A model generated the notes under the pieces. It had not been told where the DNA came from, made no database searches, and saw only the letters and a program-made list of their open reading frames with translations. A program made the position numbers and the translations under genes. A stretch of 64,000 bases of DNA, taken from sequence record OR805295.1. One strand, written 5' to 3'. This document shows positions 28,001 through 53,588 of this stretch, piece by piece. The stretch's first letter is position 1. Each line of letters begins with the position of its first letter.

Positions 28001-31000
28001 AATGTATTTTCAGTATCGTAATAATGCCATATCGAATCAGTTAAATTCTCAAAGTTTTGTAATAGATTATCATCTTGTATTAAATAACCATCCGCCTCAA
28101 ATTTACCGTACCAATCGTTTGTGCGAATGCCGCGTAACTGAAGTCTTTTTTGTCTAGAGTATAGTAACGGATCGTATATAGTATCATTAAATATAGTTTT
28201 GTTATCAAATAGTATAGCGTGTTCTGTATCGCTTGTAGAAACACGGAATAGATATATTCCAATTTGATCGCTTTCGTGAGATACAGAGATAGTTCTTCTG
28301 TCCCTATCTATAATAGTATCATTGGGCGATATAGCATATCCATTTTGATCTAATATACTATAAACACCATTTGATATTCTTTCTACCTTCTCAGGATAAC
28401 CTTCGTTTACTTCTAATGTAATTTTAGAAGCACCTGGGGCAACGAATAAAGTGTTATTTGGTGCCCATTGAGTAGTTGCCCAGAATAAGAATCCCTTAGC
28501 AGAAGTAACCCAATTTAATACTTCTCCTGTAGTTTGGTCTATTTCGTTAAATTTCCATCCGTTTAATTCTAAATACTGACCATATCCTATTAGGAAATCA
28601 AATACATCCTGAGGAGTATCTAATTCACTTCCGTATTCTATTTCGTAGAATTCGCTATAATCGCCTTCATTAATATAGTTTACTGTTATACCGCCAGTTG
28701 CAGGAAGTGATTTTAGACGCATCCAGTTATCTTGATTAAATTTTCCCTGTGCTGCAATAACAACGCATTGATAGTAGACTCCGTTATACCGAACTACATC
28801 TCCGTAATTGTACTGAACATTAGTGTCATAAATTGTGAAATTAGAAGTTGTTCCGCCTACATTTATTGTAGTTCCAGATACTAACGTACTTCTAGGAACA
28901 ACTTTAAATACAGGATTTAATACATCATATCCTCTTACTTCAAATTTTCCATATTCGTTCACACGTATTGCAACACCGCTGAATACGTATTCAGTTATAG
29001 GTTTGCCGGTGTATACTCTTACATGTATATTTTCGTTAGGTAACAACATGCTAGAATTAGTAGAGCCGCCAGATATACTATCAGCATATACGTTCAATGT
29101 ATCTACATTGGTATATCCTGCAAGTCTATGTGCTAAACAAACATCTAACGAACGTATCTTACTACCGAAATTGTATGTAATATCTTGTTTACCCATGAAG
29201 GACAATCTATCAAATACATATTGTTGATATCCAGAGTTTAACACTATATTTCCATTTACTACTTCGCCGTGGGCATATGTGTTACTATTAGCAATTCTGG
29301 TATATGTAGAACTCGATATATACTGCTTCGCGTTTATGGGTGCTCTTGTATCGTCAAGTGGATTCCAGTATCTTTCTCCGAAATCTGCAGGTTTCATTAA
29401 ATATAACAATTCTAACTGAACAAATGGCCATTCCGAATTGGTATACCATGCTTCTTCTACAGGACTATTGTCCCCGAATATCCATTCGTCTTGAAGTGTT
29501 TCTATTTCTTGATTAGAAAGCTGCGGAACTATACCTAACTCTTCTGGTGTTTTTAAATCACCAGAAGCATCTGACGGTATTAGATTTGGAACTAATCCAG
29601 TTCTTTTATACTTTTCGTGGGTGCCTGCTCTATTGCCACGGCGAATTATACCGTTTTCAATATCAGTCCACATATCAGTATTTTGTGAAGTATAATCTCC
29701 ATTATATTCTTCATCCCACCAGGTCGGCTTTTCTACAAACCCTAACATTTCCCATGGTGTTTTATTAGGTGTTAGTGTGTTATAGTAGTATTTGTATAAT
29801 CCGCGCCAGGATCCGATAGAATCGTTACTAACTGGACGATAATTCCAGGTTTTCCAGTTTAACGAATTAAATCCAGAATATAATTTATAATTAAGACTAT
29901 TCTTTAAACACCATTTTAAGAAATAAGGTTTTACTATTTCATTATATTGTTGCAGAGTATACCCGTTTTCATAAAATTTTGTCGGTTTTACATCGTCTAA
30001 TTTAAGTAATAAATTGTAATCTAGTCTAAATTTGTCGGCAATATTGTTATATATTCTTGTTTCGAATTCTAATAATAGATCATCCCTAATATCGCCGTAG
30101 GTGGGTATTTTAGAACCATCATGACCTAAAATTACTTCTGTAGGAGTAACATAACTAGTATCTACAATTATTTTAGGTTGATATACAGGATAACATCCTA
30201 TTTTAGAAGGTGTTGCAGGTATTTTTGCAGAAAGTATGTTATTGTATATACGAACAATATACGACGTATTCGAAGGTGTGCTAGACAGTTTAACAACTAA
30301 ATTATTATTAGAATACGATAGTGTATAGTCTTTATCTATTGTTAATGTATTGTAATCAACAGAAGTGCCAGTTCTTCTAAATACAAGAACAGAAGAATCC
30401 ATTTTACCTAATATGTTATTAGTCGGTACTAATAATGTATTTCCTACTGATGCGCTAGAGAAATTGTATTCATCGTATACATCACCCCATGCAGCCATAT
30501 ATGATTGCGTGAAGGCACCATTGTATTCGAACGTACTAGTAACGCGATTTATCACATACGTAAACAATGCATCTATGTTTACTGGGTTTGTATTTTGATT
30601 TAAAGGCGCTGCTATTAATTCTTTTGCATATTTTATGAACTTATCTTTATATCTAGTATACTCGTCGCGTGCAAATCTTATAGCAGAATTTATATTTAAT
30701 TCTTCGCTAGAAGATACAAGCATTGTTTTTAACAATGGACTTCTATTTTGTAGAATAAATGTACCTAAAGATTTGTCTTCTGCAGTATCTCTGTAATTAT
30801 TATTAGAACTATAAGGATCTCCTTTAAATCCTATTTGATTAGTCATTATACTAACAAAATGGTTTGTTAACTCATTCGACGAGTATTCATTTACTTCTAA
30901 GTTGTTAGGGTTATTCTCTAATTGTTGTGGAATTTGATAATACCCTAGTGCGTTATCTGGCAAAGCTTCTTTAGAATAGGTGTATGTTTGAATAACATCA

Positions 31001-33618: not shown

Positions 33619-36600
33619 TTAAATTCTCATATTCATTTCTGTTAAGTTATTTACTATCTCTACATTAGCTACAGTTGCAGTAGATATAAACAATTCATCC
33701 GATTCTGCTCTAATTTGGAATAAATTACCAAATTTAGAAGTTTGTTCTATAGGTACTATAACAACCGAACCTATAACTCCCGCTAGGGTTTGGTGAATGT
33801 ATGCTGCTAATTCTGTATAATAGAATGATTCACCGAAATCCCAGTTGTTTATGTTAAAATATTCGTCTATTGCAGAAACAACTTTAGATTTTATTTCGTT
33901 ATCAGTTAAAGTAGTAGAACCTACTTTAACTACTTTGAATGTACATTTGTATTCTTCTCTTGCTTGCTGACCAAATAATACTTTAAATCTAGCAGGCTGG
34001 AATACAATTTGGTCTGACAGCATTTTGTATGTACTAAGATCACCAAATTGTATTCTTAGTTCTTCAGTAGTAGGCGATTCAGGGAAACGTTCGATAGGTA
34101 AATTTTGATTTTTCCATTTAAGGATATCGTCATAATACGATTGTGTTAAAGTTACCATATCTACAATATTACTTATACTAGGATCTATTCTGTTATCTGA
34201 AGGAGCATAGTGTTTCCATTTATAATGCAATGGATAAAACTGAGAATCCTCATTCTGTGTATAACCCCTTCCGTTACTAACACTATGGTCATCATCAAAC
34301 ACATATGATAATACAGCATAACTTGCAGTTAATGTCATAAACTGTGCTAATGAAGACGAATTAGCCTTCGCTGCGGTTATACCTGTTATTTCGTTAATAG
34401 TTTGGTTATTTCCATTGTTAATACGTATTGTTTCGAAAATACGACTACCGGGAGAATCTAAATTCTGTGTTACAATATTTATTCCGTCATTTTCTATGCG
34501 TTCTATAAAAATAGTTGTCCCATCAACACTATTATTACTATTATAATTATCAGAATATATTGCTTCTAATACTTTAGTCCTTAGCAATGATTTAAAAGAT
34601 GATTCTGCTGCACTTGCAATTAAAACTAAGTCCCTTGCAACAACATCATTATAATTAAAATCTAAACTATTAGGATTCTGTTGGCGAAGATCTAGCCAAG
34701 ATGCTTGCCATAATCTATTATATTCATACCCGTCGTAATCTGTAGTTTTTTCGTGAAAAACTAAATCAGTGGGTGAAACAAATTGTTCGAAAATAAAAGT
34801 ATTATCTGGTATACCGTCTCTATCTCTGTCTGCAGGAACTACTACTATTTTTCTGGGATCACTATATCCGTCAGATTCTATAAATGTTTGGAAAGAATTC
34901 CAGACAATAGAATTACCTAATTGGCCTTGATTAGAATAAAATATTCGTATAATATCGTTAACTTGTTGTCCTACGTATTCTGCATCTAAAACGCCAGCAG
35001 ATGCAGCTCCAGTTGGCAATGCACCCGGTAATAATATGCCGTTTTGCCAATACTGAATTTCTTTAGGTAAAGTATCTCTGTATTTTAAAATTATTTTGTT
35101 GTCGGGATAAGTTAAACTAACTATACCATTAACCAAACGCCATTGACCGTTTCCGATAAACTGCCAATTTTCTACTATAGTAGGACCTGTGTTAATTCCT
35201 AGTATTTCTATTTCATCTCTTTGTGCAGAACCAGTGTTTATGTCATATTCGGTTTCGTCTGTATCGTAATAAAATTCTACAGTACCGTTTGTTTCAAATA
35301 TAAACTTTGTTCCTCTCGATAAAAATGTATAATTATCTGTTTCAGTAGAATATGTTAAAACAAGCATCCAGTCTTTTCTAACTGCAGGCTGAGATAAAGA
35401 TAAATCGAATTCAAAATTATCTAAATTTGTAGTAGGTACGCCTAATACAATAAACCACGAACCTTCTGGATCTACATCTATATCGTACTTTAAACCAAAT
35501 TCATTTCTTCTAAATAGTTGATTTGCTATATCTGTAGTTTCTTCTGTATCAAACGTTGTTTTATATCTAGGATATACACTATCTACATACCAATTTGCTG
35601 GAATTTCTATATCAAATACAAATAAACTTGCGTTTAATCTAGTTGCAATAAACTCATTATCTGTAGTTGCATCCCCTTGTGACACCGGGTTGGTAATACT
35701 TTTAACGGTTACTTCTTTATATTCTGTACCGTTTGTAAATTTAATTTTAGATCCGACAGAAAGGAATCTAAATTCCCCTTCTGGTCTATTATTATAATTC
35801 GTAGGGTATATATAGTTGGTAGATCCTTTAACTAAGTATCCTGTATTAGTTGCATCAGACGACGGATACGTTACCCACCTTGCTTGAGTAGAAGTGTATC
35901 TAAATATATTAGGAACTCCAGGGCGAACAATGGAGGTATTTATGGGGTTAGGAGTTGGGTTTTGTCTATATCTTATATACTCACTTAGGTAATTATTCCA
36001 ATAAAAGTTGATTAAATCTTGATTTCTGATAAATGTCTGTAAATTATTTCTAACTACTATATTTTCGCTAACTAATTTATCACCCATTGCTACTGTAGTA
36101 GAAGGCACAGTACTCTGATTGTATATAGAACCATCTTCGCCGAAAATATTTAAATTTTGATGAAATCCAGTTGGATCGTTAATATCTATGTATCTAGAAT
36201 GTCCAGAATGAGTTCTATTGATAGCATGAACTTTTGCAATAGAACTACCCTGCGTTAACGGGAAAACATTATAGTCCTCGTTGTTTACCATTCTATCTTG
36301 GGTATAGTATACTTGAGGTGCTCTGGTTTTTATCTCATCGTTTGTTTCTGTAGGCGAAGAATTAGATATAGTTTGTTCTAAACTAAAAATTAATCGAAGA
36401 TCATATTGTTGAGAATCCGCACCTATATACGGTATTACTAATTCCATCCCGGATGCTTCTTCCGGACGTAAAGTAAAAGTAGTGTTAGATGAAACTCTAT
36501 ACCATACTCTAAATGTACCTGTAGGAATAGTACCGAAATTTCCATCAGAGAATTTAACAGAAATTTGATCATTAACTCTAGAAACTACTTCAAATATATT

Positions 36601-37578
36601 TCTTATACCTAAGTTAATACTATTATAAATTATATTTGTTCCGCCAGAAACGTTAGGTACCTTAGTCCATTTTTCTTCAACAGTTCCGATTTCGTTAATC
36701 TCTTGGACCCACACATCAGTTTCATTTATATTTCTATCATTTATATCTATAATTCTATTTTGAACAGGGAAATCGAATGCAAAATCTTTAAATGCAAGAG
36801 TACCCTGTTTAAATTGCAAAAAGAAACCTGTGTTTGCAGAATCTAGCCCCTGGCCATCGTTCCTGTATATAACATGAAACGCATCGTCTGGATCGGGTTG
36901 TCTTTCCGTAAATGTTTCGTCAAAATCTGAGTTAACTACTTCAAACGGTAGGGCGACATTATTAACAACTATCGGTATAGGAAATGCAACGTTTACCCTT
37001 TTTACGTTGTTTAATTGATATAAGCTAGTAGGTATATTACCTACTGTTCCACTTTTAAATGGTCTACCGAATGGATTAGTAGAAGCAAATGCCGCATTTA
37101 ATATAGTTATAAACTTGTCATAACTATCTATATCGTTAGGATCATTCCAAAATACAGTTCTATTATTTAAATTCCTTTCTTGAGAATCTGTAACTGGTTC
37201 TGACGTTTGCACACCTATTAATTTAAATAACCCTTTAGCAGGTATATTTCGTTTAGGCTGATAGTTTATCATTCTAGCTAAACGTATAATGCTATCCCTA
37301 CGCTCAGCAGTATCCATAAAGTTTTCTCTAGAATTTAAATCCATTCTGAATGCAAGACTAGTTCCCAGATATGCAAGTAATTCTATAATAGCAATAAATT
37401 CAGAGCTTTCTATGTAATCATTAAAATCTTCAGGATAATGGATTTGAACATAATTAACTAACGCAGTCTTTAAGGAATCAAAATCATATGCTTTGAAATC
37501 GACGTCCTTGAAACTTTTATATATTTTTCTATAATCTTCCGCTGCGAACAGATTAGATTGTCTTACGTCTTGTGACAT
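33619..37578 (-). CDS. gp6: baseplate wedge subunit, T4 gp6-like, 1319 aa
   Basis: YDFDSLK...DFNDYIESSE...ENFMDTAERRDSIIRLA N-terminus; QDRMVNNEDY motif. Confidence 0.85.
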   Translation of the reverse strand: MSQDVRQSNLFAAEDYRKIYKSFKDVDFKAYDFDSLKTALVNYVQIHYPEDFNDYIESSEFIAIIELLAYLGTSLAFRMDLNSRENFMDTAERRDSIIRLARMINYQPKRNIPAKGLFKLIGVQTSEPVTDSQERNLNNRTVFWNDPNDIDSYDKFITILNAAFASTNPFGRPFKSGTVGNIPTSLYQLNNVKRVNVAFPIPIVVNNVALPFEVVNSDFDETFTERQPDPDDAFHVIYRNDGQGLDSANTGFFLQFKQGTLAFKDFAFDFPVQNRIIDINDRNINETDVWVQEINEIGTVEEKWTKVPNVSGGTNIIYNSINLGIRNIFEVVSRVNDQISVKFSDGNFGTIPTGTFRVWYRVSSNTTFTLRPEEASGMELVIPYIGADSQQYDLRLIFSLEQTISNSSPTETNDEIKTRAPQVYYTQDRMVNNEDYNVFPLTQGSSIAKVHAINRTHSGHSRYIDINDPTGFHQNLNIFGEDGSIYNQSTVPSTTVAMGDKLVSENIVVRNNLQTFIRNQDLINFYWNNYLSEYIRYRQNPTPNPINTSIVRPGVPNIFRYTSTQARWVTYPSSDATNTGYLVKGSTNYIYPTNYNNRPEGEFRFLSVGSKIKFTNGTEYKEVTVKSITNPVSQGDATTDNEFIATRLNASLFVFDIEIPANWYVDSVYPRYKTTFDTEETTDIANQLFRRNEFGLKYDIDVDPEGSWFIVLGVPTTNLDNFEFDLSLSQPAVRKDWMLVLTYSTETDNYTFLSRGTKFIFETNGTVEFYYDTDETEYDINTGSAQRDEIEILGINTGPTIVENWQFIGNGQWRLVNGIVSLTYPDNKIILKYRDTLPKEIQYWQNGILLPGALPTGAASAGVLDAEYVGQQVNDIIRIFYSNQGQLGNSIVWNSFQTFIESDGYSDPRKIVVVPADRDRDGIPDNTFIFEQFVSPTDLVFHEKTTDYDGYEYNRLWQASWLDLRQQNPNSLDFNYNDVVARDLVLIASAAESSFKSLLRTKVLEAIYSDNYNSNNSVDGTTIFIERIENDGINIVTQNLDSPGSRIFETIRINNGNNQTINEITGITAAKANSSSLAQFMTLTASYAVLSYVFDDDHSVSNGRGYTQNEDSQFYPLHYKWKHYAPSDNRIDPSISNIVDMVTLTQSYYDDILKWKNQNLPIERFPESPTTEELRIQFGDLSTYKMLSDQIVFQPARFKVLFGQQAREEYKCTFKVVKVGSTTLTDNEIKSKVVSAIDEYFNINNWDFGESFYYTELAAYIHQTLAGVIGSVVIVPIEQTSKFGNLFQIRAESDELFISTATVANVEIVNNLTEMNMRI

Positions 37579-37592
37579 GAATTAATTCCTAC

Positions 37593-37985
37593 TTATAATC
37601 TATCTATGTTAGAACTATTTTCTTGAGTAAAAATAGCAATAAGCCTTTCTGGTGTTTGGTATGGCAAAAATGTAAGTAATACCTCTATTCTTATTCCGTT
37701 GTGAAGTTGTATTACTTTTATATCGTCATCGCTATTTAATTGAACTCTCGGATCAGAACCAATTACGTCCTTGACATCATCTACAACTATTCCTACTGTA
37801 TATTCGTCTAGGGGATCCATTACATAGTCGTGTATGATACTTCCGAATTCGGGTAACATAACTCGTTCGCCCTTTCTTGTATAGAAATGATTCATTAAAT
37901 CTACTTTAACTAAATCTATGTCATTTACTTGATACGGTGGCCTAACTTTACCTACCGTAGAAAATCCAATAAACACTTTTGCCAC
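37593..37985 (-). CDS. gp25: baseplate wedge subunit, gp25-like
   Basis: DLMNHFYTRKGERVMLPEFGSII...DPL...DPRV. Confidence 0.9.
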   Translation of the reverse strand: MAKVFIGFSTVGKVRPPYQVNDIDLVKVDLMNHFYTRKGERVMLPEFGSIIHDYVMDPLDEYTVGIVVDDVKDVIGSDPRVQLNSDDDIKVIQLHNGIRIEVLLTFLPYQTPERLIAIFTQENSSNIDRL

Positions 37986-38008
37986 TTTATTATTCCTGTT
38001 TATTTCAA

Positions 38009-38016
38009 TATTTATC
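38009..38016 (-). promoter_or_regulatory. late promoter GATAAATA
   Basis: About 25 nt upstream of gp25. Confidence 0.7.
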
Positions 38017-38040
38017 TGGATATTTTTCTACATACTTAAC

Positions 38041-38069
38041 TTGACGGATAACAGTAAAATTAGTATACT
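38041..38069 (+). promoter_or_regulatory. sigma70-type promoter
   Basis: TTGACG-17-TATACT. Confidence 0.75.
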
Positions 38070-38121
38070 GTGTACATGTTAAGTAATTCCGCTTAACAGT
38101 AACTAAGCAAAGAAAAAGAAA

Positions 38122-38364
38122 ATGGCAAAAGAAAAAGTAACTTTCCCTATCTATAAATTCAACCGCATTGCAGAAATGGCTGACAAATATAATTCTAAAA
38201 CTAAGACACAACGGTTTCAAGTTATGTCTAAGTTTAAAGGAACTCAGCTTATAGAAGTTGGACTGTACGATACTAAAGATAAGAAATATGTACTAGTAGA
38301 TACACGCCATTATACAATGGATGATTGTATAAAAGAAATGGAATCTATGATTTCGGGAAAGTAA
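38122..38364 (+). CDS. small hypothetical protein inserted antisense in baseplate operon
   Basis: Own promoter and terminator. Confidence 0.8.
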   Translation: MAKEKVTFPIYKFNRIAEMADKYNSKTKTQRFQVMSKFKGTQLIEVGLYDTKDKKYVLVDTRHYTMDDCIKEMESMISGK

Positions 38365-38378
38365 CTTAAACAGAAGGG

Positions 38379-38408
38379 AGGGGGTTAAGTAACTAACCCC
38401 CTATTTTT
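38379..38408 (+). terminator. Rho-independent terminator
   Basis: AGGGGGTTA-AGTAAC-TAACCCCCT then T-run. Confidence 0.7.
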
Positions 38409-38693
38409 ATGCCCGGAAAATTAAAGTATCATAATAGCTATGACTTTGTATACGGCGTCTATGTTATCGCAAAAGATTCCCACAAAGGACAATATGTATG
38501 CATAGCTTTATCTGAAGACTTAGACGAAGAATATATATTTAATGAAATCAATTTTTATAGTGTACGCTATATAAAAGATAATTTCTACGATGTATATTGC
38601 AAATTCGATTTATTTACTTTTGCTAGAATGTTGGCAACACATTTAGAATTATTGTACGACAGAAGATACAATTATTTTAATGATGATTTATAA
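38409..38693 (+). CDS. hypothetical protein, 94 aa
   Basis: Fills gap up to the gp5-like stop. Confidence 0.6.
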   Translation: MPGKLKYHNSYDFVYGVYVIAKDSHKGQYVCIALSEDLDEEYIFNEINFYSVRYIKDNFYDVYCKFDLFTFARMLATHLELLYDRRYNYFNDDL

Positions 38694-38700
38694 AGGAGCA

Positions 38701-40134
38701 TTATGCTCCTTTATTTTTGTGCTCAGGACACGGTTCGAATGTATTAAATCTAGATACTATAGTAGTTACTCCTGGCTGAGACATTCTATTATATCTATTT
38801 GCATCACTAAACTCAGGCAATATATTAGTTTTGCCATTAGTAGTAGGTGTACTTGCTTCAGTAGGAGAATCAGGTGCCGGCGGCTGCGGACCGTTCATAT
38901 GTATATTAGCACCTAACTCGATAATATCCCCGCCTGCACTTAATCCATATGTTCCGTTAGTAGCAGTTGCTATCTGTCCTGCAGCTTGTAAATTATAATT
39001 AGAACCTGCTTTTAAAGATATATCAACTCCAGCAGTGTTATGCAAACTGCCTCCTAATTGATTTAGTAATGTATCTTTTTGCGATTGAATATTTAAATTA
39101 TTATTAGCTTGTATAAATATATCTCCGCCTTGACCTGTTAGTTCCGGTGCTATGCCTCCGGTAGAAACAGTAGTATAATCTTTAGATGCTTTAATGTTTA
39201 TATTTCTTCCTGCCTCTATATTAATATCTCTATCTGCTCGTATATTGAAATCTTCCATAAAACGTAAAGATCCGGATTTTGCACCAAACACATCTACGTT
39301 ACCTGAGTTATCTAATTCTATCCAAGCAGTGCCCAATTTATTAATTATATAAATTATTCCATTAGTTTCATCTAATCTTATTTGAGCACCAGATCTAGTT
39401 CTTAATGTGATATGTTCGGATGTGGGTGCATCATCCATGACGAACTGATGGCCGCCATGCCTTCTTACATTTGCACCGTCTATTACTGGACCTGGGGTAA
39501 GAATACCGAATACCTGGCTAGGTGCTTCCCTGCGTGCAGATGATGAAGATACACCCCGTATATTATCGTTAATAAGCCCTTGCGTTTTTAATCCTTGGGC
39601 AAGACTAGCAACAGGTTTATTAATAGTTTGTGCATTTACTTTTTCTAGTGTGTTTTTATTATATTCACCTACAGGTAAAGATTTTCCTGCTGTCTCATAA
39701 TTATTAACACTGCCAGCAACTGCAGGAATCATATGATTCATCTGTTGTTGCCATATGCATCCAAACCAAAATCCCTTTGCAGGGTCGCCGTTAGCAAACA
39801 TTACAGCTACCTGATTTTCAAGATCTGGCGGAACTGCCCACATACCGTAAGATGTTTGTGTTTCGTGGAATGCAGATACATCTTGTGAGCCGCCGATTGT
39901 CATAGGATTAGTTGCGCCAGCAAATGGCGAACAGTATCCAACTAACAACCAACCAGATTCATCGCTCGGATCAGTACCAAATTCCGGTACCCAAACCCTA
40001 AGTCTTCCCATTCTGTTGCTATCGACATTATCTTTGACAAACCCAATATACATTCCGTAATATTTTTGTGCTCTGCCTGTCGGTGTTTTGCTAGCAGACG
40101 GATTTACACCTACTGTTCTAGAATATGTACTCAT
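38701..40134 (-). CDS. gp5: baseplate central spike, gp5/VgrG-like with OB fold, no lysozyme domain
   Basis: GFVKDNVDSNRMGRLRVWVP, MWAVPPDLENQVAVMF and GHQFVMDD...LRTRSG motifs; beta-helix repeats. Confidence 0.85.
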   Translation of the reverse strand: MSTYSRTVGVNPSASKTPTGRAQKYYGMYIGFVKDNVDSNRMGRLRVWVPEFGTDPSDESGWLLVGYCSPFAGATNPMTIGGSQDVSAFHETQTSYGMWAVPPDLENQVAVMFANGDPAKGFWFGCIWQQQMNHMIPAVAGSVNNYETAGKSLPVGEYNKNTLEKVNAQTINKPVASLAQGLKTQGLINDNIRGVSSSSARREAPSQVFGILTPGPVIDGANVRRHGGHQFVMDDAPTSEHITLRTRSGAQIRLDETNGIIYIINKLGTAWIELDNSGNVDVFGAKSGSLRFMEDFNIRADRDINIEAGRNINIKASKDYTTVSTGGIAPELTGQGGDIFIQANNNLNIQSQKDTLLNQLGGSLHNTAGVDISLKAGSNYNLQAAGQIATATNGTYGLSAGGDIIELGANIHMNGPQPPAPDSPTEASTPTTNGKTNILPEFSDANRYNRMSQPGVTTIVSRFNTFEPCPEHKNKGA

Positions 40135-43194: not shown

Positions 43195-44037
43195 ATGAAT
43201 ACAAAAATTGTAGTTAATTATATTAATAATAAAGAAATGTTAAAGGAAATACATCGTAGTAAAAATTCATTCTGCGAATATATTTCCCCAGAGTATAAAG
43301 ATTACGATATTATCTTTACTTCAAAAGAAGACTGTCTGAAACAAGAAAATATAAACGCAGCAATACTTAAACGAGCAGAGCGTTTAACTCAAGTACAGAT
43401 AGATGAATATGCATTAAGAACAAATACTAGTTCTAAAAAAGCAAAAGCATCTATAACCCAAGTAGATCCTGCAACAATAAATAAACATGATGTTGTTTTT
43501 CGTGTTATAACATACGAACATATTCCAGAAGATCATGATAGGAAAAAGACAAAAAAATCAATTAAAGACTATCATGTTAAGTTAAATTTTACTCCTTTTA
43601 AACATTTTATTATAGACGAAAATAATAACTTAGTAGAAGTAGGCAGAAGTCACAGCAAAAAAGGAGAGTTTTGCTTAACTGGAGGATCTATATCAGATAG
43701 ATTAGCAAAAATGTTTATGTTGTTAATTGACAAATTCGGTCAAAAAAGCAACTGGCGTGGATATTCATATCTAGATGAAATGAAGGGACAAGCTTTACTT
43801 CAGTTAGCGTCTATGGGGTTGCAATTCGACGAACATTTAAGCGATAATCCCTTTGCATATTACACTTCGTCTATAAACAATTCTTTTACTAGGGTATTCA
43901 ACATAGAAAAACGTAATCAAATAATCAGGGACGATTTATTACAAAATATGGGACAAAATCCTAGCCTTACTAGACAATTAGAACACGATGAGCAAATTCG
44001 GTTGCTCAGAGAATTAAATGATTCTAAAGATGATTAA
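43195..44037 (+). CDS. gp55: late transcription sigma factor, T4 gp55-like
   Basis: NYINNKEML; NWRGYSYLDEM; FD...SDNPFAYYT...NSF...EK; adjacent to gp47/46 as in T4. Confidence 0.9.
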   Translation: MNTKIVVNYINNKEMLKEIHRSKNSFCEYISPEYKDYDIIFTSKEDCLKQENINAAILKRAERLTQVQIDEYALRTNTSSKKAKASITQVDPATINKHDVVFRVITYEHIPEDHDRKKTKKSIKDYHVKLNFTPFKHFIIDENNNLVEVGRSHSKKGEFCLTGGSISDRLAKMFMLLIDKFGQKSNWRGYSYLDEMKGQALLQLASMGLQFDEHLSDNPFAYYTSSINNSFTRVFNIEKRNQIIRDDLLQNMGQNPSLTRQLEHDEQIRLLRELNDSKDD

Positions 44038-44048
44038 AAGGATTTAAA

Positions 44049-45062
44049 GTGGGTAATTTATTTAAGAAAGTTGCATGTTTTAGTGATATTCACTTCGGAT
44101 TGCATCATAACTCTAAAATTCACAATCAAGACTGTGAAGATTTCATTAAGTGGTTTTGTAAAACTGCTAAAGAAAAAAATGCAGAAACATGTATATTTTT
44201 AGGCGATTGGCATCATACAAGAAACACCATTAATGTATCTACGCTAAACTACACTATGTCTAGTTTAGAACTACTAAACGATACGTTCGAAAAAGTATAT
44301 TTTATCACTGGCAATCATGACCTTATGTATAGAGAAAAAAGAGAAGTACATTCTATTCCGATGGGTCACAAATATCCTAATATAGTTATGATAGAAGATC
44401 CGTTCGAACAAGGAGATGTATCTATTCTACCGTGGTTAGTAGGAGATGAATGGAAAGATGTTCCTAAAATAAAAGCAAAATATTTGTTCGGGCATTTAGA
44501 AATTCCAGGATTTAAACTAAATGCAATGGTAGAAATGCCAGATGTAGGAGAAATAAAATCCGAACATTTTGTTAATCAAACATATGTATTTTCTGGACAT
44601 TTTCATAAGAGACAAGTAAATGGAAAAATTAATTATATCGGCAATCCATTTGGTCACAACTATTCTGATGTATGGGATTTTGATAGGGGTGCAATGTTTT
44701 TAGAATGGGGAGGGGAGCCTGAATATGTTAATTACGAAGACGGACCTAGATTCATATCCACTACATTGAAACAAATACTAGAAAATCCAGATTATTATCT
44801 TAAGCCAAAAACTCACGTAAAAGCAACTATAGATGTAGATATAACATACGAAGAAGCCAATTTCTTACGTGAAACATTCTTGTCTTCATATAAAGTTAGA
44901 GAATTTAAATTATTACAGTCTAAATATAGCGAACACGAAATAGAAAGTGATACTGAAACTGAATTCGAAACTGTAGATGAAATTGTTATTTCCGAACTAA
45001 CTAATATCCAAAGTGATAACTTTGATAAAAACATACTTATAAGCATTTACACAAACCTATAA
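44049..45062 (+). CDS. gp47: recombination endonuclease subunit (Mre11/SbcD-like)
   Basis: DIH, GD, GNHD, GH and SGHFH metallophosphoesterase motifs. Confidence 0.95.
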   Translation: MGNLFKKVACFSDIHFGLHHNSKIHNQDCEDFIKWFCKTAKEKNAETCIFLGDWHHTRNTINVSTLNYTMSSLELLNDTFEKVYFITGNHDLMYREKREVHSIPMGHKYPNIVMIEDPFEQGDVSILPWLVGDEWKDVPKIKAKYLFGHLEIPGFKLNAMVEMPDVGEIKSEHFVNQTYVFSGHFHKRQVNGKINYIGNPFGHNYSDVWDFDRGAMFLEWGGEPEYVNYEDGPRFISTTLKQILENPDYYLKPKTHVKATIDVDITYEEANFLRETFLSSYKVREFKLLQSKYSEHEIESDTETEFETVDEIVISELTNIQSDNFDKNILISIYTNL

Positions 45063-46816
45063 TGTTAAAATTTAAATCTATATCAATGCGAAATTTTATG
45101 TCTGTCGGTAATAATACACAGACTATATTGCTAGACGAAAACGATCTAACATTAGTTTTAGGAGAAAATTTAGATCTCGGTGGCAATGACAGTAAAAACG
45201 GAACCGGTAAGACTGCAAAATTAAATGCACTTTCATACGCACTCTTTGGTACAGCATTAACTAATATAAGAAAAGAAAATCTAATTAATAAAACAAATGA
45301 AAAAAATATGTATGTTAAATTAGAATTTTCGTTGAATAATAAAGAATACAAAATAGAAAGGGGAAGAAAACCCAATATATTTAAAGTTATAATCAACAAC
45401 AAAGAATTAGAAACAGACGAAACTGACGAAGCGCAAGGCGACAGCAGACAAACACAACTTGCATTAGAAAAGGAATTAGGTTTTAGTCATAATATGTTTA
45501 AAAACATAATTGCACTAAACACTTATTCCACTCCTTTTCTCTCTATGAAAACTACCGAACAAAGAGAATTAATAGAACAACTGCTAGGCATAACTAAACT
45601 AAGTGAAAAAGCAGATATTCTAAAAAATTTAGTTAAAGATACTAAAGATAGAATTAAAGAAGAAGAATTTAGAATTAAAGCAATCCAAGAAGCAAATAAA
45701 AGCATAGAACAAAACATTGCTTCTATGGAACTTAGAAGCAAAGCCTGGGATAAAAGACATTTAGATACTTTACAAGAATACAGAGAATCGCTAGAGCATC
45801 TAAATAAAATAGATATAGATACTGAAATAGAAATGCATAAAGTTTTAAAAGAGATTTCTATTAAAGAAAGAGAAAAAAATGATATTTTAAAAGAATATAA
45901 TATTGTAGAACGAGAAATACAGTCATTATCTACAACAGTATCTCACCTTTCGTCACAATTACTAAAAACTACAGAACACAACGAATGTCCTACATGCGGA
46001 CAAGAATTAAATGATAGTCATACTTCATTAACTGAATCTTTAAAATTAAAGTTAGAATCTGCAACTAATTCACTTAAAGAAAAAGAAAATGAAAAAGAAT
46101 TAATTTTAAATACATTGAATTCTATTTTTATACCGGAAAAACCATCTACGTTTTATTCGTCTTTAGATGATGTTTATAATCATAAAACTATGATTAATAC
46201 ACTAGAGCATTCTATAGAAAAAGAAGAAATGCTAACTAACCCTCACGTAGAAAATGTTTCTATTTTACGGGATAGTATAAAACCAGTGGATTTCGAAACT
46301 ATTAATACGTTAGTTTCGCTGCGAGATCATCAAGAATTTTTATTAAAACTACTAACTTCAAAAGACAGTTTTATAAGAAAAAAGATTATAGATCAAAATT
46401 TATCTTATCTAAATACAAGACTTGCACACTACTTAATAAAAATAGGATTGCCACATGAAGTAAAATTTATGTCTGACCTAGAAGTTCAGATTACAGAACA
46501 CGGCAGAGAATTAGATTTTGATAATTTAAGTAGAGGTGAACGCACCCGTTTAATTCTTTCACTAAGTTGGGCATTCAGGGATGTATTTGAAAGTCTTAAC
46601 TATAAAATAAATCTGCTGTATATAGACGAATTAATAGACAATGGATTAGATACCAGAGGTGTAGAATCTGCTTTAAGCATTCTAAAACAAATGTCAAGGG
46701 ATTCTAGCAGAAAAGTATTTTTAGTGTCACACAGAGAAGAATTAATTGGACGAGTTGATGTTCAACTAAAAGCAGTAAAAGAAGGTGGATTTACTTCCTA
46801 TACAATTGAAGGATAA
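45062..46816 (+). CDS. gp46: recombination ATPase subunit (Rad50/SbcC-like)
   Basis: GTGKT Walker A, CPTC zinc hook, LSRGE signature, YIDE Walker B, VSH. Confidence 0.95.
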   Translation: MLKFKSISMRNFMSVGNNTQTILLDENDLTLVLGENLDLGGNDSKNGTGKTAKLNALSYALFGTALTNIRKENLINKTNEKNMYVKLEFSLNNKEYKIERGRKPNIFKVIINNKELETDETDEAQGDSRQTQLALEKELGFSHNMFKNIIALNTYSTPFLSMKTTEQRELIEQLLGITKLSEKADILKNLVKDTKDRIKEEEFRIKAIQEANKSIEQNIASMELRSKAWDKRHLDTLQEYRESLEHLNKIDIDTEIEMHKVLKEISIKEREKNDILKEYNIVEREIQSLSTTVSHLSSQLLKTTEHNECPTCGQELNDSHTSLTESLKLKLESATNSLKEKENEKELILNTLNSIFIPEKPSTFYSSLDDVYNHKTMINTLEHSIEKEEMLTNPHVENVSILRDSIKPVDFETINTLVSLRDHQEFLLKLLTSKDSFIRKKIIDQNLSYLNTRLAHYLIKIGLPHEVKFMSDLEVQITEHGRELDFDNLSRGERTRLILSLSWAFRDVFESLNYKINLLYIDELIDNGLDTRGVESALSILKQMSRDSSRKVFLVSHREELIGRVDVQLKAVKEGGFTSYTIEG

Positions 46817-49591: not shown

Positions 49592-50044
49592 ATGAACGAT
49601 TACACACATTACACAGAGGAAGATTTCATATTTTTAGCATATGATTTAAATACTCAGCTTATAAATGATGGATATCCTGACGCTGCTGTAAAATTTATTA
49701 CTAATCAGTTTATTTTAGAGCATAGACATCCTGACGAAATAAAACGTTGTATAGGATGTAATTCTAAAATGTATGAAGATGTTATTGCTACTAAGAGAAA
49801 TTTATCTGGTAAATCGCATTGCAGACATTGCGAATCGAAACTTAGTATGTATAAGGAAGTTGTTAAGGAAGTAGCAAATACAACACAAATACTTCGCATA
49901 CCAGAAAAACATTTAAATTCAGTTAAACGATTAATTAGAATATATAATGAGCAAAACAAAACTGGTGCATATCAGAGTATATTAGTTAAAACAAAGAAAC
50001 TTAACACAGGAGTTTCTAAAAAGTCAAAAAGAAAGGGACGTTAA
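49592..50044 (+). CDS. hypothetical protein with CxxC...CxxC zinc finger and basic tail
   Basis: CIGC...CRHC; GAGG RBS. Confidence 0.85.
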   Translation: MNDYTHYTEEDFIFLAYDLNTQLINDGYPDAAVKFITNQFILEHRHPDEIKRCIGCNSKMYEDVIATKRNLSGKSHCRHCESKLSMYKEVVKEVANTTQILRIPEKHLNSVKRLIRIYNEQNKTGAYQSILVKTKKLNTGVSKKSKRKGR

Positions 50045-50060
50045 TTGTCCCTTTCTTTTT
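50026..50060. terminator. bidirectional terminator
   Basis: AAAAAGAAAGGGAC-GTTAATT-GTCCCTTTCTTTTT. Confidence 0.85.
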
Positions 50061-50286
50061 ATAGGAAGCTTCTACCTGTTTCTGCTTCAATTTTTTGTTT
50101 AATAAATTCTCCTAAACGTACCCGCTCTTGATATGATAAAGACCAAGCAGTGTGCCAGTCAAATCCATTAATTTTATCACATATTTGGACTATTTCGCCT
50201 TCTAATCCCAGTGATTCTTGTTCATATTCTTGTATAACGTTCCTAATATCATCTGGGGTTCCCGATACTAGGATTCTCTGAAAAAA
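50059..50286 (-). CDS. start-less ORF (gp51-like) reached by predicted -1 frameshift from gp26-like gene
   Basis: 73 codons QRILVSGTPDDIRNVIQEYEQE...WHTAWSLSYQERVRLGEFIKQKIEAETGRSFL; no in-frame ATG/GTG/TTG; T TTT TTC slip site. Confidence 0.75.
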   Translation of the reverse strand, partial: FFQRILVSGTPDDIRNVIQEYEQESLGLEGEIVQICDKINGFDWHTAWSLSYQERVRLGEFIKQKIEAETGRSFL

Positions 50287-51122
50287 CTTACTGGATTAAA
50301 ATCTACAGGTACTACAAAACTTTTATTACAGTTGTCACATACTGCATCAAAGTCGCCATTAACTCCTACTTGATTTATTTCTTTTAAAAGACTATCTATT
50401 TTATTAACATCTGCTCTATCTATATTTGCTATAAATTCTTTTATATCAGCCAGTGTCTGAGGAGTATTATTAACTATATCTATACCGTTAGTTTCATCTA
50501 CAATACGAACTATTGTTTTTGCAATTAATTCGAAATTTAATGATGACAGTTCATTTATTGTGTTAGAAAATGCAGAAAGTTTTTCTTCATCTGAATACAT
50601 ATCGCTTTGCATTATTCTAATAAATTTTGCTTGTTCTAATGCAGTTTTTGCAACTGTCATATTATCTGAAAAATCATATGGTCTAATAAATATAGATAGA
50701 CCGTTATCGAGGTTCACGACGTATTGATCTTCTAAATAAGTGGACGTATTAATAACATTTAATAAGTCTATTCCATATAAATTTTTATGATTACAATGCG
50801 GGCACGTAGAAGAAATATCTATTGTGTTACCGTATGATGCTGCTTTTATAGCAACACATATCATATGAATGTCATTAATTAAGAGTTTATTTACATCTTT
50901 AATTCCCGGTACACAACTCTTAATTACTTCTTTTAAGCCTTCACCGTTCACTAATGCATCAGGATTTTTTATTAATACTTCATCTTTTCCTGTCATAGCA
51001 TATACCCCTAGTTCTCCGGAATCGGTGTATTCTACAACATTTGATGGATAAAATGAATTTCCGCTGGGCAAACGAATATAAGATTTGAATGTTCTGTAAT
51101 ATTGATGTAATTTGTTGCTCAT
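50268..51122 (-). CDS. gp26: baseplate hub assembly protein / chaperone, T4 gp26-like
   Basis: YIRLPS...VYAMTGKDE...KNPDAL..G; D...I.VAIKAASYG; CPHC and CxxC. Confidence 0.85.
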   Translation of the reverse strand: MSNKLHQYYRTFKSYIRLPSGNSFYPSNVVEYTDSGELGVYAMTGKDEVLIKNPDALVNGEGLKEVIKSCVPGIKDVNKLLINDIHMICVAIKAASYGNTIDISSTCPHCNHKNLYGIDLLNVINTSTYLEDQYVVNLDNGLSIFIRPYDFSDNMTVAKTALEQAKFIRIMQSDMYSDEEKLSAFSNTINELSSLNFELIAKTIVRIVDETNGIDIVNNTPQTLADIKEFIANIDRADVNKIDSLLKEINQVGVNGDFDAVCDNCNKSFVVPVDFNPVSFFRES

Positions 51123-51141
51123 AATGTGTATATGCTCTTTT

Positions 51142-51169
51142 GATAAATATGCTATATACCGTATTTATC
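51142..51169. promoter_or_regulatory. back-to-back late promoters GATAAATA (+ 51142-51149; - 51162-51169)
   Basis: Between divergent gp26-like and tape-measure genes. Confidence 0.75.
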
Positions 51170-51191
51170 ATAGCATTTTATAGAGGTTCTT

Positions 51192-53588
51192 GTGGCAGAA
51201 GATATTAGAATTGTTGGCGTTGATCCTAGTGTCCCTGGCTGGGCTCGAGAAGAAACTCTTAATAAAATAGTATCTGAGTTAAAAAAACTCAATGGATCTA
51301 ATACAAGAGAAAACGACGAACTAAAAGATGCAGTAGATGAACTAGTTAGGGTAACCCGTAGATCTAACGAAGATACATCTAGAACAGATAATAACACTGA
51401 AATAAAAGAAGCATTAAATAGATTATCTTCTTCGTTAAAACAACAGAAAAAATCTGATAATTCTTTATCTGCAAAGCAAGGGGGAAACAAACCTCCCGTA
51501 TTGCCGCCTGACAATAAGAAATCTAAATTAGATACAGATACTATAGGCGCATTTATTACTGCCGTCGGTACTGCTTCAAAGGCAGTAGCAAAATTTACTT
51601 TAAGTATGGCATCTTTTGCAGTTGGCGGAAGTATATATGCTGCATTAAAGCAAGCTGCATCGTCGCAACTTACTTTATCTAGAGATTTATATAAATCAGG
51701 TTGGAACTTCGGAACGGTATTAGACGATGCATCTGGTATTATTAAATCTACCAACTTAGACGGTATTTCGTATGCCATAAAAGGTTTAGGTATAAATTCA
51801 TCTGCACTATCTGAAGTATTAAAAGGCAATGAATTAGCAATACAAAAATACGGAATAAAATCGTTTGTAGATTTGTCTTCTAGCTTAAAAAGACAAGGCA
51901 ATAGCTTAGGTATGTCTTTAAAAGAAACAGCAGATTATGTAGGAGAATATTTAGAATCTCAACGTTTAATGGGTACATTTGATAAAATGCGCCAAGTAAA
52001 CATGACTGCCCTTGCATCTAAAGCACTTAAAGATACCCAAGCATTTGCTACTGCGTTAAGAATGTCTACAGAAGACCTACAGGCAAAAATGAATGAAAGT
52101 TTAAAAGATGTAGACTTTCGTGTAGCAATAGAATCAGTTAACGCAAATTCTAAAGAAGCCGCTGCCCAAATTTATGCTGCTTTGCCAGAACAATTGCAAA
52201 CTATGTTTAAGGTAGCTCTTAAAGATACTCCGTCTTTTATGGCATCTAAAGAATACGCCGATTTGATAAAATCCGGGCAAGGAGAATTAGCTAGACAAAT
52301 AATTGCAGTATCATCTGGACTGAAATCTGGTAATATAACTAACGGTCAGGCAGATGATGCAATGAAACGACTTATAAAATCTACTAGTTTTGCAGAAAGT
52401 ACAATGCGTAGACTTGCTATGCTAGATGCTCGTGGACTAATAGATAGTAATGTTGCTGCTGCTGCGTATGGATTAAAAGACCTTAGAGATAAAATGGATG
52501 GTCATTATGAAGGAATCCAAAATACAGAAGCTACAAATTTAGCAAAAGTTGAAGATGTAAGAAATAGAGCATTAGCTGTATTAGATACGTTTGTATCATC
52601 TATAATGAGAGCAGGATTCGAATCTGACGAATTTGCTAAATTATTAGATAATGCAAATGAAATGTTAAAAACAATTCATAATACAGCAGAAGACTTAGGT
52701 AAACAATTAGGTCCGGAATTATTTAAATTTGTTAACAATGCTATGGAATATCTAAATGGTTTATTTAGTAAAGATGTAGCAGGAAATATAAATGTAAATT
52801 ATTCTAAAATAATAGGAGATATTTTAACAAGTTCCGGTGCTGCTATAGTAGTTGGCGTTCTTGCTATTATGACTACATTTAAAGGTGTTGTTATTTCTTC
52901 GTTATCGTCGTGGCTTAAAGGTGCATCAGGACCTATGTCATCATTAGGTGGCACAGTAAAAACTATAGCAGGAAGATTAGGGGCATTTGCAGCACTAGCA
53001 GTATCGTTTACGAATGGAATAGGTAGATTAAGTCAATCAATTTCAGAAGGCGGCGATGCAATAGAATCTGCATTGAATTTTTTATCGGGCGCAGGCGAAG
53101 GTATAATAGATCCTGTGTTTAAATCCCTTACATGGGCAGCTAACAAATTAGGTATAGTATCTGATGAAGCAGCAGATGGATTTAGTAAATACATCAGTGA
53201 TACTAATTTGCAACAGTTCTTGGGTCTACAAGATATACCTATAAAAGTAGAAACTACTAATAAACCTGCATATACACCGCCTGGACCTACTGCTACTAAA
53301 ACATCTGCATACGGTAAAATAGAAACTCCGAAAGCTCCTGCTATAATTCCTACAGCTCAGCCAGATGTAGCAGATGCAGCAAAACAAAGTCCTACTCCTG
53401 TAGATCCTACTAGCAATATAAAGCCTATAGAAAATACAGGAATGAGTTCTCAAGACATGCTAAATAGAAGTACAGATAAACTTATACGTTTACAAGAAGA
53501 ACAAATACGACAGTTACAAGAGCTTGTAGATATTCAGCGCAGAGCATTAGCTGCTACTAGAGAAACTGGATTTACAAGAACTAGGTAA
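51192..53588 (+). CDS. probable tape measure protein, 798 aa
   Basis: Long helical Ala/Leu/Ser/Gly-rich protein with Pro-rich C-terminus next to gp26-like gene; no diagnostic motif. Confidence 0.7.
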   Translation: MAEDIRIVGVDPSVPGWAREETLNKIVSELKKLNGSNTRENDELKDAVDELVRVTRRSNEDTSRTDNNTEIKEALNRLSSSLKQQKKSDNSLSAKQGGNKPPVLPPDNKKSKLDTDTIGAFITAVGTASKAVAKFTLSMASFAVGGSIYAALKQAASSQLTLSRDLYKSGWNFGTVLDDASGIIKSTNLDGISYAIKGLGINSSALSEVLKGNELAIQKYGIKSFVDLSSSLKRQGNSLGMSLKETADYVGEYLESQRLMGTFDKMRQVNMTALASKALKDTQAFATALRMSTEDLQAKMNESLKDVDFRVAIESVNANSKEAAAQIYAALPEQLQTMFKVALKDTPSFMASKEYADLIKSGQGELARQIIAVSSGLKSGNITNGQADDAMKRLIKSTSFAESTMRRLAMLDARGLIDSNVAAAAYGLKDLRDKMDGHYEGIQNTEATNLAKVEDVRNRALAVLDTFVSSIMRAGFESDEFAKLLDNANEMLKTIHNTAEDLGKQLGPELFKFVNNAMEYLNGLFSKDVAGNINVNYSKIIGDILTSSGAAIVVGVLAIMTTFKGVVISSLSSWLKGASGPMSSLGGTVKTIAGRLGAFAALAVSFTNGIGRLSQSISEGGDAIESALNFLSGAGEGIIDPVFKSLTWAANKLGIVSDEAADGFSKYISDTNLQQFLGLQDIPIKVETTNKPAYTPPGPTATKTSAYGKIETPKAPAIIPTAQPDVADAAKQSPTPVDPTSNIKPIENTGMSSQDMLNRSTDKLIRLQEEQIRQLQELVDIQRRALAATRETGFTRTR

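Follow-up and report, generated by a model that had tools for sequence, protein, structure and literature searches.

A probable programmed -1 frameshift joining a gp26-like hub assembly chaperone to a gp51-type tail in Pseudomonas phage Paride and related phages

The tail assembly chaperones gpG and gpGT of phage lambda share an N-terminal domain, and a -1 slip at an X_XXY_YYZ heptamer gives rise to the long form, which is in the minority. The heptamer lies a few codons 5' of the stop, and the pair has an assembly-chaperone role in tail morphogenesis. Such a -1 frameshift is reportedly conserved among tail assembly chaperones, as Xu, Hendrix and Duda are said to have described in 2004. The frameshift conserved in the tail chaperones of other long-tailed phages has, to our knowledge, been considered absent from T4 and its relatives. 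Here we analyze a gp26-like gene in a window of 64,000 nucleotides (nt) of sequence record OR805295.1, the window being the whole stretch of DNA that was analyzed. The region is that of Pseudomonas phage Paride (100% identity), a PA5oct-like jumbo phage (Arenbergviridae, Wroclawvirus), and a window coordinate x corresponds to x + 186000 in Paride. Comparison with related sequences makes it probable, at roughly 85%, that a programmed -1 frameshift yields a short and a long hub assembly chaperone from this one gene. The Paride locus would resemble lambda G/GT in having a short and a long protein produced by a late -1 slip, with the same chaperone logic. It differs in that the gene is not directly 5' of a tape-measure gene on the same strand, and in that its T4 relatives act on the baseplate hub.

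In T4 the corresponding functions are carried by two genes, as the first-pass annotation of the window had stated. Both proteins are full-length members of PF12322 (gp26, E 9e-64; gp51, E 8e-55), and they are 20% identical (BLASTP E 1e-5). T4 gp26 has 208 amino acids (aa) and carries Phe-Phe, encoded TTC TTT, at the point equivalent to the slip site; it stops three codons later, with gene 25 directly next, and no slippery heptamer is present at its end. T4 gp51 continues the PF12322 domain in frame into about 48 additional C-terminal residues, which are related to the Paride extension. Since both proteins are PF12322 and gp51 is the longer, T4 has two divergent genes for the same domain, one encoding it in a short and the other in a long version. 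T4 thus differs from Paride in having two diverged, divergently transcribed paralogs without a slippery site instead of one gene with a frameshift, and in a tail of about 48 aa against an extension of 73 aa. The first-pass annotation had equated gp26 and gp51 with lambda G and T; the equation of gp26 with G stands, whereas gp51, being a full-length PF12322 protein with an added tail, corresponds to GT and not to T. Both proteins are listed as hub assembly chaperones, gp51 being essential and of unknown function (PMC3004832).

Two further systems are close to the Paride locus. Sullivan et al. 2010 (PMC3037559) recorded a 'short' or truncated gp51 in cyanophages and marine vibriophages, without an explanation and without mention of frameshifting, and the same source gives gp51 as 'missing' in Aeromonas phage Aeh1. 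Like the Paride extension, the cyanophage 'short gp51' is a small open reading frame (ORF) directly past gp26 that resembles the C-terminal portion of T4 gp51, and in P-SSM5 and 80 related contigs it is in the -1 frame and is preceded by T_TTT_TTC; the cyanophage copies usually have an ATG of their own and the window copy has none. The dnaX and IS3-family cassettes resemble the Paride site in combining a heptamer of the H_HH.U_UU.Y class with a downstream stimulatory structure (PMC4066793), and differ in protein family and purpose; no upstream Shine-Dalgarno-like stimulator is evident in Paride. The window heptamer falls in this class, whose members are among the most efficient in E. coli, where U_UU.C also ranks second among tetramers (Sharma et al. 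2014, PMC4066793).

The elements on which the proposed frameshift depends are:

50268..51122 (including the TAG), minus strand: gp26-like hub assembly chaperone gene, short form, 284 aa in the 0 frame
50280..50286, minus strand: slippery heptamer T_TTT_TTC in the X_XXY_YYZ register, 3 codons 5' of the 0-frame stop
50059..50295, minus strand: ORF in the -1 frame, with 73 codons at 50280-50062 and a TAA at 50061-50059
50241..50273, minus strand: hairpin, likely frameshift stimulator, a 10-bp stem with a 3-bp inner extension

The 0-frame product ends Phe-Phe-Arg-Glu-Ser before the TAG at 50270-50268. The -1 frame is closed by a TAA at 50298-50296 and is thereafter open to the TAA at 50061-50059, and translation of this ORF confirmed that ATG, GTG and TTG are all absent from it. 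The two products would have 284 and about 354 aa, the latter obtained by arithmetic (281 + 73). The coordinates given in the first-pass annotation for the heptamer, the stem and the -1 stop were all correct on the minus strand, and its statements on the upstream TAA, on the missing standard start codon and on the two product lengths were also correct. A 43-aa ORF with a GTG start on the plus strand (50150-50281) spans the slip site and the hairpin. Phage vB_Pa-PAC2 has it annotated as a hypothetical protein, but it is probably a false prediction overlying the -1 extension.

Among the 58 window ORFs of at least 100 aa, an in-frame heptamer within the last 12 codons was found in three, a long open -1 frame past the stop in 17, and both features in two. 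The second ORF with both features (45037-45402, minus strand; heptamers TTTAAAT and AAATTTT) was judged a chance occurrence because it is antisense to SbcD/SbcC genes. Since the combination is not unique in the window, the single-genome observation is suggestive only; the signal rises far above chance because it is kept in every relative examined.

The gp26-like protein was found by tblastn in 97 phage records of the PA5oct-like, Rak2/121Q/GAP32/CBB-like, Atu_ph07, Phosso, XacN1 and SCTP-2 groups, with 25-31% identity outside the PA5oct group. Ten further PA5oct-like jumbo phages match the window region at 98.6-99.7% identity, and the frames are the same in all eleven independently sequenced PA5oct-like genomes. 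The comparison set comprised 83 distinct jumbo-phage gp26-like genes with 28-57% protein identity, drawn from cultured jumbo phages, IMG/VR contigs (80 loci) and one Logan contig (L178, 56% identity). An in-frame heptamer is present 1-11 codons 5' of the stop in 83 of these 83 genes, as T_TTT_TTC in 67, A_AAT_TTT alone in 13 and T_TTT_TTT in 3. Every complete locus has a -1 ORF of 69-92 codons, mostly 75-78, 3' of the heptamer, and in all relatives examined the -1 frame is closed by a stop 0-21 codons 5' of it. Six cultured relatives have T_TTT_TTC at the gene end and a -1 frame leading into a small annotated ORF.

The codon ahead of the heptamer is one for N, S, H, D, T or A with a third base that is always T, and in the A_AAT_TTT type the preceding codon ends in A; the baseline in gp26-like genes is 36% T at third positions, and TTT makes up 71% of Phe codons. 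The 0-frame tail past the heptamer varies in length, and the -1 peptides align starting at the slip site. The first ATG, GTG or TTG of the extension lies at codon 1-7 in 20 of the 83 genes, at codon 8-20 in 27 and beyond codon 20 in 34, and is absent in two, the window among them; L178 has none near the start of its -1 ORF.

The 284-aa protein is a member of PF12322 (T4_baseplate; E 3.2e-25, 89.5 bits against a gathering cutoff of 24.5), its residues 38-282 matching profile positions 16-219 of 219, that is, to the profile end. It also matches phrog_150, baseplate hub, and PF12322 is carried by 95 of 96 homologs. An AlphaFold2 (AF2) model built from a 60-sequence alignment reached a mean local confidence (pLDDT) of 90.7 and a predicted template-modelling score (pTM) of 0.86. 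Its matches in BFVD were annotated 'baseplate hub assembly protein, T4-like' (template-modelling score, TM, 0.85-0.89; best E 2.5e-27) and include gp26 of Aeromonas phage 25; a Foldseek search of the model against the PDB gave no significant match. The same fold was seen in BFVD in Bacillus phages SP-15 and BCD7, Campylobacter phage CP220, Ralstonia phage phiRSL1 and Ackermannviridae, Tenacibaculum and Leptospira phages, some of these targets having 430-600 aa. The PA5oct homolog carries no note of virion detection by electrospray ionization tandem mass spectrometry (ESI-MS/MS) in its record.

Searched by tblastn against 50,697 phage records, the extension matched only the 11 PA5oct-like genomes; phmmer against 1.84 billion proteins returned three small ORFs (69-74 aa) and no long fused protein, and neither the single sequence nor a 40-member alignment had a credible match in Pfam, PHROGs or the PDB. 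Profile comparison with gp51, a check named in the first-pass annotation, gave a moderate signal that grew with the number of sequences used. By hhalign the extension reached 1% probability against the single T4 gp51. With 40 extension peptides against 22 gp51 proteins the probability was 27% (P 7e-4), the C-terminal half of the extension aligning with gp51 residues 222-256, past the Pfam domain; on the same scale two bona fide PF12322 domains reach only 18%. Against 98 gp51 tails the extensions gave 67% (P 5.4e-5, score 27.5), and none of 300 column-shuffled controls reached this score (9.8 +/- 2.2, maximum 20.9). A hidden Markov model (HMM) of 74 extensions was run against 989 sequences, about 790 of them decoy ORFs; gp51 proteins filled the next 25 places after the self match, and 92 of 100 gp51 proteins were reported, 88 of them at residues 220-250. 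A 361-aa homolog on a 1.3-kb contig (P0095) gave no match to this HMM. These comparisons, moderate in strength, link the -1 extension to the tail at the C terminus of T4 gp51 (about residues 200-249).

T4-type relatives were located by tblastn with T4 gp26. One PF12322 gene followed by a small ORF was found in cyanophage P-SSM5, where the small ORF is annotated 'similar to gp51', and in Aeromonas phage PX29, Nitratidesulfovibrio phage SRB7757, Serratia phage Kevin and Pseudomonas phage Cygsa01; in Acj61 the genes are arranged as in T4 and the heptamer is lacking. In P-SSM5, PX29 and SRB7757 the heptamer T_TTT_TTC stands one codon 5' of the stop and the small ORF lies in the -1 frame. The gp51-tail HMM matched these -1 ORFs with E values of 1.3e-9, 1.5e-4 and 0.012, respectively, and the small ORFs of Kevin and Cygsa01 with 0.16 and 1e-3. 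By hhalign the cyanophage-type set reached 97% probability to gp51 tails and 41% to the jumbo-phage extensions. The heptamer is present in 80 of 80 P-SSM5-like contigs, with adjacent codons that vary. The annotations of a truncated or missing gp51 coincide with the -1 ORF (P-SSM5 locus, 2470-2666; PX29 locus, 2490-2681) and are probably a consequence of the frameshift.

A hairpin begins 6 nt past the window heptamer, its 10-bp stem pairing 50273-50264 with 50250-50241 and including one G-U pair. It is the centroid fold, with a minimum free energy (MFE) of -14 kcal/mol and a z-score of -2.0. Over 74 loci the 55 nt past the heptamer had a median MFE of -12.8 kcal/mol, against -6.3 in an upstream control window, and z was below -1.5 in 57% of the loci. 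The clade nearest PA5oct has a hairpin 5 nt past A_AAT_TTT that is 90% paired over nine sequences, with compensatory two-sided changes at 4 of 9 pairs. Its covariation score, obtained by specifying the helix on the nine in-register rows of 12 and counting pairs, exceeded all 500 shuffles and all slid controls. RNAalifold on all 12 nearest-clade sequences returned no structure, because three rows are out of register. The hairpins of the window and of L178 occupy the same position as that of the nearest clade. In 49950-50400 no Rfam family attained its gathering score, and every sub-threshold match fell 3' of the hairpin.

The -1 ORF is followed by a second hairpin:

50025..50061, minus strand: terminator-like hairpin followed by a T-run, starting at the -1 ORF stop

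The scan found no terminator-like site from the 0-frame stop to 50061, and the start of this hairpin at 50061 bears out the earlier statement that the -1 frame ends right at a terminator. The hairpin sits between the convergent -1 ORF (minus strand) and a 150-aa ORF (49592-50044, plus strand), and since T-runs flank both sides it may terminate transcription bidirectionally.

Several observations weigh against a programmed frameshift joined to a gp51-type tail. The window hairpin is only moderately unusual, 10 of 200 shuffles folding as well, and with z above -1.5 in 43% of the loci the structure is weak or absent in some lineages. The homology of the extension to the gp51 tail is moderate and spans about 34 columns, with some 25 more residues in the extension than in the tail. 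Matches of the gp51-tail HMM at E up to 10 omit the window's own extension, so that the link to gp51 draws on the jumbo-family profile. The CBB homolog is annotated 'structural protein', unlike a pure chaperone. The remaining points concern start codons. A start lies within 7 codons of the slip site in the 20 jumbo-phage genes counted above, which would allow the extension its own translation; in 72 of 77 cyanophage loci an ATG occurs five codons further along, 2 nt past the 0-frame stop; and in PX29 the start codon adjoins or overlaps the 0-frame stop, so that the small ORF could be translated by itself. In the Kevin locus (2480-2660) and the Cygsa01 locus (2090-2282) the small ORF is in the -1 frame behind a U_UUC tetramer only, and these ORFs have TTG or TAATG starts.

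These start codons, together with the ATGA or TAATG overlaps at the 0-frame stop of Phosso, 121Q, PX29 and Cygsa01, the lack of a canonical heptamer in Kevin and Cygsa01, the annotation of the extension in relatives as separate small ORFs and the failure of phmmer to find a fused protein, would also fit a different explanation, in which the 73-codon ORF is a separate small gene ('short gp51') expressed by re-initiation or coupling, from a rare start in Paride, and no fusion is made. We consider this unlikely. Neither the window nor L178 has an ATG, GTG or TTG near the start, and the first start lies at least 8 codons into a peptide conserved from the slip site in 61 of the 83 genes and is lacking in two more. 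Separate initiation is thus possible in a minority, the first start being at codon 1-7 in only 20 of 83, and to judge from these positions it cannot supply the conserved N-terminal half of the extension domain in most lineages. A separate gene would also leave unexplained the retention of the heptamer in 83 of 83 and 80 of 80 loci and the matching third base of the preceding codon, and the T4 gp51 tail functions covalently attached to a PF12322 domain. Kevin and Cygsa01 may represent a lineage-specific switch from frameshifting to coupled initiation.

A fusion could also arise through slippage of RNA polymerase on the T-run, by which a minor share of the mRNAs would lose or gain one base and directly encode the long protein. 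The T-run is 6 nt long (7 nt in a few relatives), and long A/T runs are known sites of such slippage (general knowledge; PMC4066793). This run is short, and in the nearest clade it has only 5 T, within A_AAT_TTT. The conserved X_XXY_YYZ register and the preceding third base matter to tRNA re-pairing and not to the polymerase, and a conserved hairpin at a spacing of 5-6 nt fits ribosomal frameshifting; slippage by the polymerase is very unlikely. That a sequencing indel or a real mutation split a continuous 354-aa gene is barely conceivable, for although homopolymers are error-prone in some sequencing chemistries and T4 gp51 is an example of a long gene without a break, 11 PA5oct-like genomes and over 160 related loci from cultured phages and metagenomes agree in their frames, the -1 stop 5' of the heptamer is present in all, and no continuous form was found among close relatives.

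The central claim of the first-pass annotation, that a gp26-like protein acquires a gp51-like tail through a -1 frameshift, is thus supported by conservation and by the relatedness of the tail. Of the checks and refuting outcomes that it had named, the heptamer proved to be kept in both the jumbo-phage and the cyanophage loci, the comparison of extension and gp51 profiles exceeded every shuffled control, and the sequencing-indel objection failed on the identity of the frames in the eleven genomes.

We propose that most ribosomes on the late gp26-like mRNA would stop at the TAG and release the 284-aa PF12322 protein. A fraction would pause over the hairpin while U_UUU_UUC occupies the P and A sites, move back by one base and read 73 codons in the -1 frame, giving a long form of about 354 aa whose first 281 residues are common to the short form and which would end in a gp51-type tail. 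The transcript would end at the terminator just past the -1 stop. The short form would be the counterpart of T4 gp26 and the long form that of T4 gp51. Both the occurrence and the rate of the slip are inferred. The long form would be a low-abundance 'catalytic' partner, and the pair may chaperone the tape measure and the hub as G/GT does in lambda, a parallel suggested by the shared logic and by the T4 hub pathway.

The first-pass annotation had described the locus as lambda G/GT logic in a T4-related phage. The same logic is indeed apparent, and homology to the lambda-type chaperones in sequence or fold was not found. No Pfam tail-assembly-chaperone family reached threshold for the 284-aa protein or the extension; phrog_15960, 'tail assembly chaperone', matched weakly (E 0.015), and the best Foldseek chaperone match was HK97 2ob9 (E 2.1, TM 0.41 by target length). 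Membership in the lambda G/GT protein family is therefore not supported by these comparisons.

The tape-measure candidate of the locus is the gene divergent from the gp26-like gene:

51192..53588, plus strand: divergent gene for a 798-aa virion protein, context only, candidate tape measure

Its product is marked 'structural protein' by ESI-MS/MS in the PA5oct record. The AF2 model is all-helical and of low confidence, and the protein is fast-evolving, with 2 homologs among 5.8 billion proteins; it has no match in Pfam, PHROG or the PDB and no BLASTP similarity to T4 gp29. The gene is divergent and not downstream on the same strand, as H is in lambda, and in T4 gene 29 is found three genes past gene 51. 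A role as tape measure is plausible, in that the profile fits, and this proves nothing.

A broader reading is that the PF12322 pair is the functional counterpart of lambda G/GT in the T4 superfamily, and that the frameshift is ancestral, retained in phages ranging in size from 140 kb to the 490 kb of jumbo phages and in marine cyanophages, and replaced only in T4-proper by duplication of the gene and fixation of the long frame, so that the T4 gene pair would be derived. We regard the chances of this joint claim as evenly divided. If it is true, it would document the exchange of a recoding signal for a paralog, and T4 gp51 would receive a role as the minor long isoform of a chaperone, where its 'catalytic' function has lacked an explanation since the 1960s. 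The frameshift itself, if true, would make gp26 and gp51 the short and long forms of one chaperone, with frameshift and gene duplication as alternative natural solutions to one stoichiometry problem. It would account for the truncated gp51 recorded in cyanophages and vibriophages as well as for the gp51 'missing' from Aeh1 (PMC3037559), and hundreds of phage genomes would need a joined coding sequence replacing a stray hypothetical protein of 50-75 aa. In the literature, of which subscription journals were incompletely covered so that an earlier report is possible, we came upon no account of frameshifting in gp26-like genes; the same incomplete coverage applies to our finding no description of gp26/gp51 as G/GT equivalents.

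Two further observations concern the surroundings of the locus. A 3857-aa ORF (22039-33612, minus strand), annotated 'virion structural protein', adjoins genes for baseplate wedge, gp25-like and gp5-like proteins (33619-40134). The 69-bp divergent intergenic region between the gp26-like and 798-aa genes (51123-51191) has TATAAAAT- and GATAAATA-like motifs, which resemble T4 late promoters, and a late sigma factor is encoded at 43195-44037.

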